Source: Macrostomum lignano (Eukaryota). From it: DNA of 43,923 nt. Where the stretch lies: positions 1-43,923 of the forward strand of contig NIVC01003254.1 of the NCBI GenBank assembly GCA_002269645.1, written 5' to 3'. The notes under the pieces were generated by a model that worked only from the letters and a program-made list of their open reading frames with translations, was not told where the DNA came from and did not search any database. Below, in pieces: positions 16,928-43,078 of this stretch; the first letter of the stretch is position 1, and the number at the start of each line of letters is the position of its first letter. The position numbers and the translations under genes are program-made.

Positions 16928-17734
16928 ATGGTTCACCTGTTCCACTTTTGCGTTCGGCTTCTCCTACTTTATCCTAACAAGTCGCTGTAAGCATTATTTA
17001 TGATATTCATAAATGTGTTTTCTGTTGTTAACTAGATAAACAAATAATAAAGCCTTGTTATTTGTTCAGCTTCCACAGATGCTGCCGTACTATTTAGAGG
17101 TCAGCGCAACCTCCTTCAACCGGTTGGTCCTTCTCAGTTGGTGCTCATGCCCGATGGGAACGGCTCTAACAACATAGTAGCTTATAATGCTCGCCACCCT
17201 CCACGTAACTCGAATAGAATTCAAAGTGACGATTCGAACCCCGCAGTCTGTGAGGTCACTCGGTCAGACGGCAGCTTGCATTACGTTGTCTGCAAGCAGT
17301 CTTCAAGCTACGGAGACTCGTTCTGTTGCGGCAGACGGCCAGCTCAGTACTGCTGCAGCTTCGAAGAGTTCTACAAAAGCAAAAATCGAAAGAAGTCGGA
17401 CAATTCTCAATCTGGTTTGATCGAAAGAATTGGCGTGTTCGCCATCGGTTTAGTCTGCTCCCTGCTGTTCTCCTGCTGTCTCTGCCTTATAGTCTGTCTG
17501 TGCATTGTGCAGCCGAAATGGCGTCAACGAACAGCGGTTGGCGCCATGCAGAGACGCACCGGTGGATCCGAGAAAAGCGGCTCTTCGGTGGCGTCTCAGA
17601 AAACTCTGTCGTCCATGCCGTCTCGTCCGGCGTCTCCGTCCCCGCCGCCGATGCAGCCTCCGCGGCAGCCTCAGATACCGCTTTCGCTGCAACTGCCTCC
17701 GCCGCCGCCGCCTTACTCACCTCCTGCTCAATAG
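16928..17734 (+). CDS. Shisa-like (six-Cys) single-pass protein S1, about 231 aa, divergent member
   Basis: join(16928..16986, 17098..17734), phase 2. Ectodomain VC..VVC..SFCCG..QYCC; TM IGVFAIGLVCSLLFSCCLCLIVCLCIV; tail ending PPPPPPYSPPAQ (PPxY). First exon less certain. Confidence 0.75.
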
Positions 17735-18706
17735 CGGTAGCTGAATCAGTAGCAGCTTGTCAATGCGCACAAGCTTGATCTTTCAATTTACAGGTAAGAG
17801 TTGAAAAAATCGAATTATTTTATAAGAAAGAGCATTATGACTAAGGCTGTGGCCATTAAAAGGACAAGACAATTCATGTAGCTGAATGAAATTCATGTAA
17901 CTCAAAACCAAAAGCATGAGCAATAGGCGAAAATTTGAAAAAAAAATTTCTGACCTAAAGTAAAAAGTAGTCCGTTTTTCTGTTTAAGCTATTTGAATTT
18001 AGAAAACGGTCTTAATTTAAACGATCTTAATTAAAAAAGGCCTGCTATCTTCTAAATTCTTCTGAATTTCGATTACAAAAAGACATAAGCCAACCTCGGA
18101 AATCTTTTAGGGGCTCTCCCTGGGTACTCCCTTCATGGCATGAGTGCTCCCTTTAATGCAGGGGTGCTCTCTGAAAGGGACGAGAGCTGTTTAAATCTCA
18201 TTAATTCGATTATTTACTTGCTTTACTAACGAAAGACGCCACGCATGTTTCAGTTATTCTTCCGCTCTGCATTCGGCAATCGGAAAGCACTTGAAATTGC
18301 AACAAAAATACGTCCAAGGTCTTTGAAGTGAATTGCAGCAAGCCGCGTTTGTGGCGCCAACCAAACAGTAACAATAGAAAAATACCTGTAACATGAAATC
18401 AACATTCGTTCCCTGTCTACTCTGCGTGTACTAAAACACAAAAAGTCCACTACGGACAGAGTTACACCGTAATAATGTCGCTATTTGTGTAATATTTTCT
18501 CCGTATCTTCACATGCGCAAGCATCATGCGCTACACATTGAAATATGCTGTAAAGAATATCATTTCTTTCGTTTAATAAACTTCTTTTAAGCACAGAAAT
18601 ATCTTCTTAAAGGAGTCAGCGGGAACGGGCAGAATTCCTTCAGCGCCGTCACATCAACGTTGCACAATGGTGACCACAACCATGCTGCAAGTAATATCGA
18701 TATTAA

Positions 18707-19070
18707 AGGGGGGCCGTAGCCCAGCGGTCTAGCGCAGGCTCTGATGTGCCAGCGACCCAGGCTCGATTCCGGGTGCGGTCACATTAATTTGGGGCTGGAT
18801 TGGAATCTCGGCTTGGCTCTGCTCGTGCAATTAACGGCCTTGAGAGCCAACCCCCAAGGCGCAGTGAAGTGTACATGCCTAACGATAATATAAAGTTAGG
18901 GCCGCTGTACACTCCTGTGTGAGTGTGTGCCTGCGTACGTATCCGCGCGCTTGTGTGCCTGCTCAGGGGAGTCGGCGGAATGGGCAGTAATGCCTCTCGC
19001 CGGTTGTGTGTTGATGTCGCTTGAAGTGCGCCAGGGTGCACACAACCCGCCTGCCTCTAATAAAAATAAC
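18707..19070 (+). mobile_element. SINE family 2: tRNA-derived SINE with 12-bp TSD
   Basis: TSD TATCGATATTAA at 18695..18706 and 19071..19082; head GGGGGCCGTAGCCCAGCGGT..GGCTCGATTCC (A/B boxes); tail AATAAAAATAAC. Confidence 0.85.
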
Positions 19071-39700: not shown

Positions 39701-40800
39701 AGTGAAGTATTTAGGGTTTGTCTCGGGGTTGTCTCGAGGTAGTCTGGTAGGTCGTTGAATCCCACCGCTGCCACCAATGTTGTACCTGTGCTTCTCCTAC
39801 TGTCTAGCACAGTGATTTGGGCTCTCCGTCTTCTCAACCGGAAGCCTTCGATTAGCTCTTAGTAGCGTAGGTAGTGCTGCCACCAGTTCCTTCAGGTCTC
39901 GGCGTTCGGTGAGGTGAGCTTCCCGTCGGAGCGAAATAAACAAGTCAACGATTTCAGCACAGCGTGCAGATTTGCAGATTAATGAACAAGGCGTCTTGGT
40001 CAGCAGATCCCACCGGGCTCAAGGGGTGGCTGGGAAGGCAGTGTTAGCCTCCCTTAGGCTTGGGCGTCTAAGTTTAGTCAGGCAAGTTACAGATAGCTTT
40101 AATTGGCAACTGACCGAAGTATGGAAAGCTAGACTAAAGAAGAACAGCAACAAGAAGAAGAATCCTTGACTCAACCAAGGGTGAGGGGCAAATATTTGAA
40201 GGCAGGAAATCCTCGCTGCACCAGTGTGCGCCGGACCTCGTGACTCTGTTCAATTTTTAGAACTGACGTCACCCTCCGCCTTAGGGAAGGCAGGATTTGC
40301 GGGTAAAGTGCACAGAGCCGCATGACTCAGTATCTATTTTTAGAAACATGAGTCCCCTATTACCTTAGAGAAGGCAAGGGCCCGAAACACGTGATTCCTC
40401 CTGTAAACAGGGGACAACGAGACTTTAGGACTTCGAGAAAACAAGACTTGTCATGTGACTTGTGTCACTTGTTCTATAAGTTTTATTGTAGAACTCCTTG
40501 TCTGAGGCAAATATCCAGCTTCCGCTCCTCTTCCCTTCCCTACTTGAAGCGTGGCTCAGAAATCTATATTGTTTAATCAAGGAATCAAGGATTTAGAATT
40601 CCTTGGTTTAATCAAAGCTAATGCTTACATGCTTTGGCGACCCTAAGCCCATAGACATGGCATTTATCCTTTGAAGGACAAAAAGAATCGTTAAAATAGT
40701 AAGAAAAGCATTTAAAGACACGCAGACAATTTTGGCATTTCTGGTCAAATGTTCAACCCGAAGCATTCATCGCCTGCAAGCCTACTGGATCATAGCGTGA

Positions 40801-43078
40801 ATGAATCGTCAGAGTGTTGTTATTTTGTTTATTTCTTTCTTAACACGGGCTGTGATTTGTAAGTTAGCACTAATTAATTTTATGTCTAGACAGTTAATTC
40901 GTAATGACAAGAAAAGATTCAGACAGTGACATATATGTAGACATTAGTATCGGTAAACAAGTAAAGATTGTACGGCTAGTAGTCACAACAATGAAAGAAC
41001 GATATCGAATCAAAAAGCGGTAGGAGAGAGGCGGGTGGCGAACCGATGATTCAGCATTTTTTGAAAACACTAACCTGACGCGGTTACTGTCGCTGGACTA
41101 TAACAAATTAGAAATGACACTCTTTTTAACGGTGTTAAAATTCGAACCCTCTAAATCTTTTTTTTTAAATGAATTCGTTGAATTGTGGAAAATATTAACA
41201 TTTGAAAGTCATGATTCTAAAAAAAGTTCGATGTTTTCAACCATATAAATCTTTTTTGCTTTATTACCATTTTGGACAGCCTCTAAGGCTCTAAGAAAGT
41301 TTCAGAAAAATCGGAAAATTGGAAGTATGAGTCCAAGTGCTGCTCAACCCTATAAGCCTGTTCTTATACTAGTGATTTACTACTTTCTCAAAACTTTAGG
41401 CAACACGGCAAGTTCGAGTCAAGCAAAATTTAAAGGGTACGTAAAAAATCATTACACAGAAAATCTTTTTAAATCATTTGATACTCTGCTTATTTACATC
41501 GATAATCCACAAGTTTCTTTTTAAACTTCAGAGGCGTTCCAGCCAGTGAGTCGATGCTCAGAAACGACACCGTTTACATTTCCGACAAGATCCGCCACCT
41601 GTTAGTAGACCCCAGCACAGGACTGTTCAAGTCGAATGTCAACTTTGAAGTGATAACTGTGTGCTTCTCGCGTCGATTTGATCACAGCAGAGGCTCGCGC
41701 CAGTACGAAATGTTCGTCTGCCCGGAGCAGTCCGGTGCCACACAAGTCGCTACTTACTCCGGCTTGGTTTCCAGGGGCGAGACAAAGTCCTACTGCTGCG
41801 GTGCCAAAGCGAAACAATGGTGTTGCGATTTTATTAAATTCTCTGACAAACACCGAGAAGAACAAAAGCGTTTATCGAAGGTTCTCATAGCAATAATTTG
41901 CGTTGGCTCGTTTGCTGTAGTCATCCTTATTGTCCTGATTGTAGCTTGCATTCACCACAGCTGCAGCCGACAGAATGGAAGAAGTTCATCGCAAGTAAGT
42001 AACTAAAACTTAATTTTTTGACACACGCGGCTTTCAGTTTGTCAGCTAGTTATTAGTTTGTCAGTTAGTTAGTTAGTTAGTTAGTTAGTTATTTATTTAG
42101 TTAGTTAGTTAGTTAGTTAGTTAGTTAGTTAGTTAGTTAGTTAGTTAGTTAGTTAGTTAGTTAGTTAGTTAGTTAGTTAGTTAGTTAGTTAGTTAGTTAG
42201 TTAGTTAGTTAGTTAGTTAGTTAGTTAGTTAGTTAGTTAGTTAGTTAGTTAGTTAGTTAGTTAGTTAGTTAGTTAGTTAGTTAGTTAGTTAGTTAGTTAG
42301 TTAGTTAGTTAGTTAGTTAGTTAGTTAGTTAGTTAGTTAGTTAGTTAGTTAGTTAGTTAGTTAGTTAGTTAGTTAGTTAGTTAGTTAGTTAGTTAGTTAG
42401 TTAGTTAGTTAGTTAGTTAGTTAGTTAGTTAGTTAGGTATTTAGTTAGGTATTTAGTTAGTTAGTTAGTTAGTTAGTTAGTTAGTTAGTTAGTTAGTTAG
42501 TTAGTTAGTTAGTTAGTTAGTTAGTTAGTTACTTAGTTAGTTAGTTAGTTAGTTAGTTAGTTAGTTATTTAGTTAGTTAGTTAGTTAGTTAGTTAGTTAG
42601 TTAGTTAGTTAGTTAGTTAGTTAGTTAGTTAGTTAGTTAGTTAGTTAGTTAGTTAGTTAGTTAGTTAGTTAGTTAGTTAGTTAGTTAGTTAGATAGTTAC
42701 TTTGGTAGTTAATTTGGTAGTTAGTAAATTATAAATTTCATAGAACTGTATTTATTGCTGCTAACAATAAATTGCAATGATTGCATCCCCTGTACTCAGG
42801 GTTTTCAAAAGCAGGAACAACAACAACATGGAAGCCAGCAGCAGCAGCAGCAGCAGCAGCAGCAGCAGCAGCAGAGTTATCAAGGGTTGCAGCTGCAGCA
42901 GGACTCCCTGTCGCACCAGCAGGCACATCCATATGGAGGCTTCACACAGCCGCAGGTTCGCCCAGAATACCCCCCGATGCACCAGCAGTCGCCAGAGCAA
43001 TACCCTCCGCCACCGCCTCCTCCATACATGTATTCTGGAAGCAATGACTCGATCCAGCAAGTGCCACAAAAGCAATAA
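40801..43078 (+). CDS. Shisa-like single-pass protein S5, about 278 aa, 4 exons
   Basis: join(40801..40858, 41400..41436, 41532..41994, 42800..43078); phases 1,2,0. VCF..MFVCPE..KSYCCG..QWCC; TM VLIAIICVGSFAVVILIVLIVACI; poly-Q and YPPPPPPPY tail. Confidence 0.87.
42053..42695. repeat. (TTAG)n microsatellite, about 160 units, S5 intron 3
   Basis: Visible. Confidence 0.98.

Follow-up and report, generated by a model that had tools for sequence, protein, structure and literature searches.

The question raised by contig NIVC01003254.1 of Macrostomum lignano (GenBank assembly GCA_002269645.1), analysed over its 43,923 nucleotides (hereafter the window), is what is encoded by a run of five genes, S1 to S5, whose predicted proteins each carry six ectodomain cysteines (Cys) and one transmembrane (TM) helix. 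An original prediction made from the sequence had put them forward as a candidate for an undescribed system. All five genes turned out to be already deposited in GenBank/UniProt as hypothetical proteins, with family members auto-labelled as CX, CYYR1 or Shisa N-terminal proteins, and they are uncharacterised members of a known superfamily and no new kind of system. The account preferred here, with moderate confidence, is that of an old tandem cluster of five STMC6/Shisa-like paralogues, likely to act as membrane adaptors through PPxY or proline (Pro)-rich tails.

Five six-cysteine genes and their models

A search of the six-frame translation for C-x(6-30)-C-x(5-35)-CC-x(5-9)-CC found five matches in the window and no more, and the same regular expression had no match among 100 block shuffles of it. 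The five matches correspond to five open frames with the Cys pattern in the list of open reading frames (ORFs), and the genes follow each other from S1 to S5 on strands + + - + +; the prediction of five six-Cys Shisa-like copies in mixed orientation is therefore borne out. In tblastn, the S3 protein found the other copies at E 3e-45 (S2), 2e-26 (S4), 1e-25 (S5) and 2e-7 (S1). Gene models, guided by public M. lignano proteins and by direct sequence reading, are given below with their exons, strand and six-Cys match.

S1: 16887-16986, 17070-17734; + strand; two exons, 254 aa; six-Cys match at 17249-17356
S2: 19723-19801, 19994-20046, 20129-20738, 21949-22338; + strand; four exons, frameshifted; six-Cys match at 20277-20432
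S3: 33684-33597, 33175-33124, 33022-32545, 31734-31489; - strand; four exons, 287 aa; six-Cys match at 32722-32877
S4: 33937-34003, 34643-34685, 34769-35204, 37202-37330; + strand; four exons, 224 aa; six-Cys match at 34893-35036
S5: 40801-40858, 41400-41436, 41532-41994, 42800-43078; + strand; four exons, 278 aa; six-Cys match at 41662-41826

The frames of the Cys exons stay open 5' of the listed ATGs up to polypyrimidine-AG acceptors, and their 3' ends are GTAAGT-type donors. All five models have GT-AG introns, and S1, S3, S4 and S5 translate without interruption; the spliced model moves the start of S1 from 16928, as first proposed, to 16887. Intron phases 1/2/0 are common to S2-S5, with exon 1 encoding the leader (phase 1), a short exon 2 ending in ..[YF][KN]G (phase 2), a large exon 3 holding an N-terminal extension, the six Cys and the TM helix (phase 0), and the tail on exon 4, 1.2-2.0 kb downstream of the Cys/TM exon. 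S1 has the first intron alone, and its six Cys, Cys-rich TM and Pro-rich tail all lie within exon 2. S3 and S4 lie head to head, their ATGs separated by 252 bp (33685-33936), a spacer that may act as a shared bidirectional promoter.

The models agree with public ones as follows: S1 has the 254 aa of GenBank PAA52367.1 (BOX15_Mlig027099g1), S3 matches UniProt A0A1I8GDV2 (P0002) end to end, S5 matches P0004/P0021 (BOX15_Mlig026036g1 / Mlig022124g1), the exons of S2 map to the intact 378-aa P0003/P0020, and at the site equivalent to S4 on contig NIVC01001769.1 a 224-aa gene is called. The assembly (Mlig_3_7, GCA_002269645.1), in which repeats abound and redundancy is high, was annotated from a genome-guided RNA-seq transcriptome (PMC5730564). 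Three public models are corrected by the present ones: S2 is truncated in the first, the S3 tail is out of frame in the second, and the third is a chimera of S5 with a long interspersed nuclear element (LINE). In PAA64267.1 (P0001; L003 10001-12185, NIVC01001769.1) the tail exon of S3 is translated out of frame (CRRRCGRRC...); with canonical GT-AG splicing it encodes a Pro-rich tail of PPPM repeats, as in A0A1I8GDV2. The 519-aa model P0006 wrongly joins a LINE fragment to the S5 Cys exon 41532-41994.

In every protein a hydrophobic leader is followed by the six Cys, a single Cys-bearing TM helix and a tail rich in Pro. The leader is N-terminal and hydrophobic in S2-S5, and one internal hydrophobic segment per protein reaches Kyte-Doolittle values of 2.7-3.3, an arrangement from which a type I single-pass topology is inferred. 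Cys residues within and just after the TM segment, which had been predicted together with the Pro-rich tails, were found in all five copies. The Pro content of the tails ranges from 14 to 43%, and canonical PPxY motifs occur in S1 (PPPY), S3 (PPMY) and S5 (PPPY); S2 and S4 keep a Tyr within PPxxY at the extreme C-terminus. A Ser/Thr-rich stalk between Cys domain and TM is found only in S2, whose 135-aa tail has 41% Pro and a PPLP; the tail of S3 is made of PPPM repeats and ends in FPPPMYHQ, that of S5 is Gln-rich with PPPPPPPY, and S4, the shortest member, ends in APPRMY. No class I PDZ ligand is present at the C-termini of S1-S5 (..SPPAQ, ..PSQY, ..MYHQ, ..PRMY and ..PQKQ respectively).

Of the five copies first described as intact, four are so, since S2 is frameshifted in its second exon as assembled. 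This exon (19994-20046) measures 53 nt in the window and 58 nt on NIVC01001769.1 and NIVC01002728.1, the lesion consisting of two deletions, one of 4 bp, next to which substitutions have produced a GTTCATCTT direct repeat, and one of 1 bp. Being 5 nt short, the exon throws the spliced coding sequence into a stop. The copies on NIVC01001769.1 and NIVC01002728.1 are intact and in agreement against the window. The frameshift also accounts for the truncated GenBank model of S2 on the window contig, PAA52368.1 (P0019), which has 270 aa and starts at an internal Met. Rescue by a splice variant was rejected on reading the sequence, as an upstream AG acceptor leaves the frame unrestored. In the remaining S2 coding exons, 4 synonymous and 0 nonsynonymous changes separate the copy from its homeologue. 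S2 may be truly disabled in this copy, or the assembly may be locally wrong.

Superfamily membership and nearest relatives

The STMC6 superfamily, as delineated by Pei & Grishin 2012, is said to comprise Shisa, Shisa-like, WBP1, WBP1L/OPAL1, VOPP1, CYYR1, TMEM92, CX and DUF2650 proteins. It is already known for lineage-specific diversity, and its vertebrate members Shisa1-9 include Wnt/FGF antagonists and CKAMP auxiliaries of AMPA receptors, Shisa6-9 bearing a C-terminal PDZ ligand. Like STMC6 members, S1-S5 are small and single-pass, and they share with them an ectodomain (C*C*CC*CC) that directly follows the leader, an F-x-C-P context at the second Cys (Cys2), a first CC within YCCG, an aromatic residue soon after the last CC, further Cys in and after the TM, and a tail rich in Pro, in which S1, S3 and S5 have PPxY. 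The defining features of the superfamily and the roles of its members as WW/E3 adaptors are set out in PMC6125347, PMC11399591 and PMC5578492. S2-S5 differ from STMC6 proteins by a Cys-free N-terminal segment of ~48 residues, a 13-residue insertion and a tail placed on a separate exon, and S2 and S4 differ further in having no canonical PPxY.

A profile of the four main exons of S2-S5 was searched against 1.84 billion representative proteins at E <= 1e-3 and yielded 18 matches in all, six of them below 1e-30, each an M. lignano S2-S5 model. The second tier (E 1e-7 to 7e-4) consisted mostly of hemichordate and echinoderm Shisa-like proteins, along with ENA/Logan contigs and the M. lignano proteins P0011/P0022. 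Relatives found at E 1e-7 to 2e-5 pass Pfam thresholds by themselves: P0007 reaches 44.8 for CYYR1 (cut-off 31), and P0010 and P0012 reach 36.9 and 26.8 for Shisa_N (cut-off 22). The best matches outside Macrostomum include shisa-3/-4/-5-like proteins of Ptychodera (XP_070578740.1), Saccoglossus (XP_002732975.1) and Anneissia (XP_033110568.1), at E 1e-7 to 4e-4. These hemichordate and echinoderm proteins are of similar size and align with S2-S5 from Cys2 via CCG..CC to the TM, but they are without the N-terminal extension, their loop between Cys2 and CC is short, and the similarity extends over ~70 residues only. Because a TM-driven match had to be excluded, the ectodomains alone were compared with the Shisa-like set by hhalign, which aligned them from Cys2 through CCG..CC at 96.8% probability and E 2.4e-10 and brought out the 13 residues inserted in S2-S5; this comparison is partly circular, the set having come from the matches of the same profile.

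No true vertebrate Shisa figured among the 18 profile matches, whose sole vertebrate entry was P0015, a 1,855-aa CEACAM1 matched on profile positions 117-155 (TM region) only and rejected as compositional. P0008, a long protein matched on short repeated or TM stretches, was rejected likewise. Word-indexed searches brought up no further relatives: whether the query was S3, S1 or a 6-sequence alignment, all matches were to M. lignano proteins or to P0012, itself a row of that alignment. P0012 is a 154-aa Shisa_N-positive protein from a Logan SRR19053155 contig (L002, 1,216 bp), and its IICPVE and YCCGP..QYCC..SEF resemble S2-S5.

Shisa_N is the best or near-best Pfam match of all five copies (E 4e-4 to 1e-2), with bit scores of 16.6 for S1, 20.6 for S2, 15.8-18.2 for S3, 20.8 for S4 and 18.9-19.3 for S5 set against a gathering cut-off of 22. 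WBP-1 (PF11669) was matched by none of the cluster genes, the paralogue P0011 scoring 23.1 against 28.1, and CX (PF01705) had no match in the Pfam copy used, with exon proteins searched to E 10 and full-length proteins to E 1. Matches to Commissureless, glycophorin, protocadherin and adenovirus E3 lay on the TM segment below cut-offs and were discarded as compositional. As all Pfam scores are sub-threshold, S1-S5 were filed in the STMC6/Shisa-like superfamily and in no named Pfam family. Identity with this superfamily is nonetheless very likely, and the STMC6/Shisa-like plan initially proposed holds up on the six Cys, the TM helix, the relatives passing Shisa_N or CYYR1 and the ectodomain alignment.

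The same searches bear on whether S2-S5 could be diverged orthologues of conserved named genes (Shisa1-9, WBP1, VOPP1, CYYR1) and form no distinct subfamily. In favour of such orthology, UniProt auto-names the S1, S3 and S5 models 'CX domain-containing protein' and one S4 model 'Cysteine and tyrosine-rich protein 1', S4 weakly matches CYYR1 and DUF4690 in Pfam, and the best non-Macrostomum match, P0007, passes CYYR1. CYYR1, itself an STMC6 protein, and SNORC/DUF4690 are the best sub-threshold matches of S4. CYYR1 recruits the E3 ligase WWP1 via its PPxY (PMC11399591), a motif of which S4 has no canonical version. Orthology to named genes is decidedly improbable, however, as every Pfam score of the cluster genes is sub-threshold, the best outside match (E 1e-7) covers profile positions 85-157 only, that is CCG..CC and the TM, the N-terminal extension is matched by M. 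lignano proteins only, and S2-S5 are paralogues of one another that share a derived exon structure. The one-to-one orthology to known Shisa-like genes that had been named in advance as contrary evidence was sought for S2-S5 among the 1.84 billion representative proteins, and no such orthologue was found outside M. lignano.

Several observations weigh against the cluster being one of STMC6/Shisa-like adaptors. Shisa_N (PF13908) stays below 22 bits everywhere (range 15.8-20.8), and S4 reaches 16.7 for CYYR1 (PF10873, cut-off 31) and 26.8 for DUF4690/SNORC (PF15756, cut-off 30.7). The circularity of the ectodomain comparison and the frameshift of S2 in the window contig count in the same direction, as do the weakly hydrophobic N-terminal leader of S1 and the absence of a canonical PPxY from S2 (which ends in PPSQY) and S4 (which ends in PPRMY). 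The gene identifiers were also unmentioned in the literature searched, which covered full texts and the supplements of M. lignano papers.

The S2-S5 subfamily, its outlier and its history

S2-S5 have in common the conserved Cys-free N-terminal extension of ~48 residues and the 13-residue insertion between Cys2 and the first CC. The motifs originally listed for them are all present, i.e. DSVYV, DSIFI, NSVYV or DTVYI in the extension, VCF...F[VI]CPE, [ST]Y..L and K[ST]YCCG. F-x-C-P at Cys2 and YCCG are generally found in the outgroup as well; the subfamily is set apart only by its VCF context, its N-terminal extension and its loop. S1 has neither extension nor loop insertion and only two exons. 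Its ectodomain aligns with those of S2-S5 in hhalign at 93% probability (E 2.8e-7) with all six Cys aligned, and with the outgroup set at 85%, below that value. The grouping predicted for S2-S5, with S1 outside, is upheld by the shared exon structure, extension and insertion. As far as can be judged from sequence, S2-S5 form a distinct subfamily together with the unlinked paralogue P0011/P0022, and S1 is a divergent, more distant member of the cluster.

This paralogue (BOX15_Mlig031315g1 / Mlig030059g1, NIVC01002471.1), named 'Shisa N-terminal domain-containing protein' by UniProt, shares with S2-S5 the N-terminal motif SVY[IV]..KLRP, YFICP, KYCCGP..QYCC..EEF and a G|G exon junction before the Cys exon, and its tail carries a PPAY. 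It differs from S2-S5 in being unlinked and single-copy at its locus, in having three exons with the tail unsplit, and in its shorter Cys2-CC loop. Within the databases searched, the subfamily appears to be restricted to M. lignano.

The extension was also considered in structure prediction by AlphaFold2 (AF2). A five-sequence alignment gave a mean predicted local distance difference test (pLDDT) score of 58.9 and was set aside, and with six sequences the best model of the S3 exon reached 71.8, with ~85 at residues 1-20 and 41-70, 78-88 at 71-100 and 58-66 at 21-40. In this model Cys1 and Cys2 sit on a beta-hairpin, the inserted loop contains a short helix, and residues 126-153 of the exon make up the TM helix. 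With a pLDDT of ~85, residues 1-20 of the extension are predicted to be ordered, residues 21-40 being less certain. Foldseek of the model against the PDB found nothing below E 3.8, hence no solved structural analogue, and a PDB sequence search gave only chance TM matches to integrin beta-2, which were rejected.

The window is collinear with NIVC01001769.1 across the whole cluster at 96-99.5% identity, including a long terminal repeat (LTR) element, and S1 is 100% identical between the two; where the window is at position ~23890, NIVC01001769.1 carries ~9.6 kb of additional inserted sequence. At least S1 and S2 are present in a third copy, on NIVC01002728.1. Between the coding exons of the window and those of NIVC01001769.1 there are 14 synonymous and 14 nonsynonymous changes, giving a ratio of nonsynonymous to synonymous polymorphism (pN/pS) of 0.31 (binomial p 0.002 vs neutrality); in S5, 8 of the 12 changes are nonsynonymous. 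Among the paralogues, synonymous divergence (dS) could be computed for S2-S3 (dS 1.25, ratio of nonsynonymous to synonymous divergence, dN/dS, 0.33) and S3-S5 (dS 2.19, dN/dS 0.27), dN/dS being otherwise not computable because dS is saturated. Saturated dS between paralogues and a pN/pS of 0.31 therefore indicate that the duplications are old and the genes constrained.

These copies could be taken for a decaying cluster whose paralogues have lost function or are weakly constrained, in a polyploid genome that is redundant and rich in repeats. Such decay would fit the frameshift of S2 exon 2 in the window, the three or more near-identical copies of the locus in the assembly, the transposable elements and tandem repeats that fill introns and spacers, and the preponderance of nonsynonymous changes in S5. 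It is very improbable given that four of five genes are intact with canonical splice sites, the pooled pN/pS is significantly low, all six Cys and the motifs have persisted although paralogue dS is saturated, the two other copies of S2 are intact, and the gene models are transcript-based. With five genes here and one paralogue type elsewhere, the sequences point to a small, stable family under purifying selection, not rapidly diversifying; to have called it diversified was too strong for so small a family with saturated dS, purifying selection and one broken copy.

A putative adaptor function

In the STMC6 proteins characterised so far, PPxY tails recruit WW-domain proteins or NEDD4-type E3 ligases, and this recruitment governs how their membrane-protein partners are trafficked or degraded (PMC11399591, PMC6125347, PMC5578492). 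An adaptor role is the best hypothesis for S1-S5 because they have the same architecture. By analogy with WBP1, WBP1L, VOPP1, CYYR1 and Shisa, from which WW-domain binding, adaptor function and the nature of the partners are inferred, each protein would hold a partner membrane protein through its ectodomain and TM, bring in WW-domain proteins (NEDD4-family E3 ligases, for instance) through its PPxY/poly-Pro tail, and thereby control the trafficking or turnover of that partner. This mechanism is proposed tentatively. Other tail partners are possible, given that S2 and S4 are without PPxY.

S1-S5 might instead be surface receptors or stalked proteins that signal or adhere through their ectodomain, with tails binding partners of SH3, EVH1 or profilin type and not WW-domain E3 ligases. 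The mucin-like Ser/Thr-rich stalk of S2, its 41%-Pro tail with PPLP and the lack of PPxY in S2 and S4 would suit such receptors, and the predicted structured N-terminal extension hints at a specific extracellular ligand. Shisa-like adaptors are nevertheless the nearest relatives that could be detected, and a C-terminal PPxY is kept in 3/5 genes and the PPxxY Tyr in the other two, so that a receptor role is considered unlikely.

A more far-reaching idea, quite unlikely as it stands, is that S2-S5 and P0011 would constitute a Macrostomum-restricted (or macrostomorphan) STMC6 subfamily whose structured extension and loop insertion would form a new extracellular recognition surface, regulating the turnover of specific surface receptors. 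Shisa-like/STMC6 proteins tune the trafficking of receptors (Wnt, FGF, AMPA receptors, CXCR4) via NEDD4-type ligases, and a subfamily with such a recognition surface would, if real, act on patterning or regeneration signals, for example, unlike other Shisa-like proteins. M. lignano is a regeneration and stem-cell model in which RNA interference (RNAi) and transgenesis are available, and a subfamily that is small, clustered and lineage-specific, and whose gene models are clean, is amenable to in situ hybridisation and RNAi.

Around the cluster, a fibrinogen-related gene (Fibrinogen_C; 12343-13714, - strand) lies just upstream and has the same neighbouring position on NIVC01001769.1. An LTR retrotransposon occupies 23861-30107 between S2 and S3, with 137-nt direct repeats 6.1 kb apart and reverse-transcriptase and integrase pieces (RVT_1, Integrase_H2C2) broken across several frames. 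The S4-S5 interval contains a LINE-type reverse-transcriptase fragment at 38305-39633 (RVT_1 E 3.8e-5, 23.9 bits vs a cut-off of 29.6). An ATG-initiated ORF of 200 aa at 870-1472 (+ strand) had no Pfam match. Tandem-repeat arrays with periods of 4-23 bp are found at 348-809, 4801-5839, 6231-6965, 7294-8833, 9442-9862, 10474-11036, 34060-34508, 37777-38292, 42036-42725 and 43423-43914, one of them inside intron 1 of S4 and another, a 690-bp (AGTT)n array, inside the last intron of S5, and several yield spurious long ORFs.

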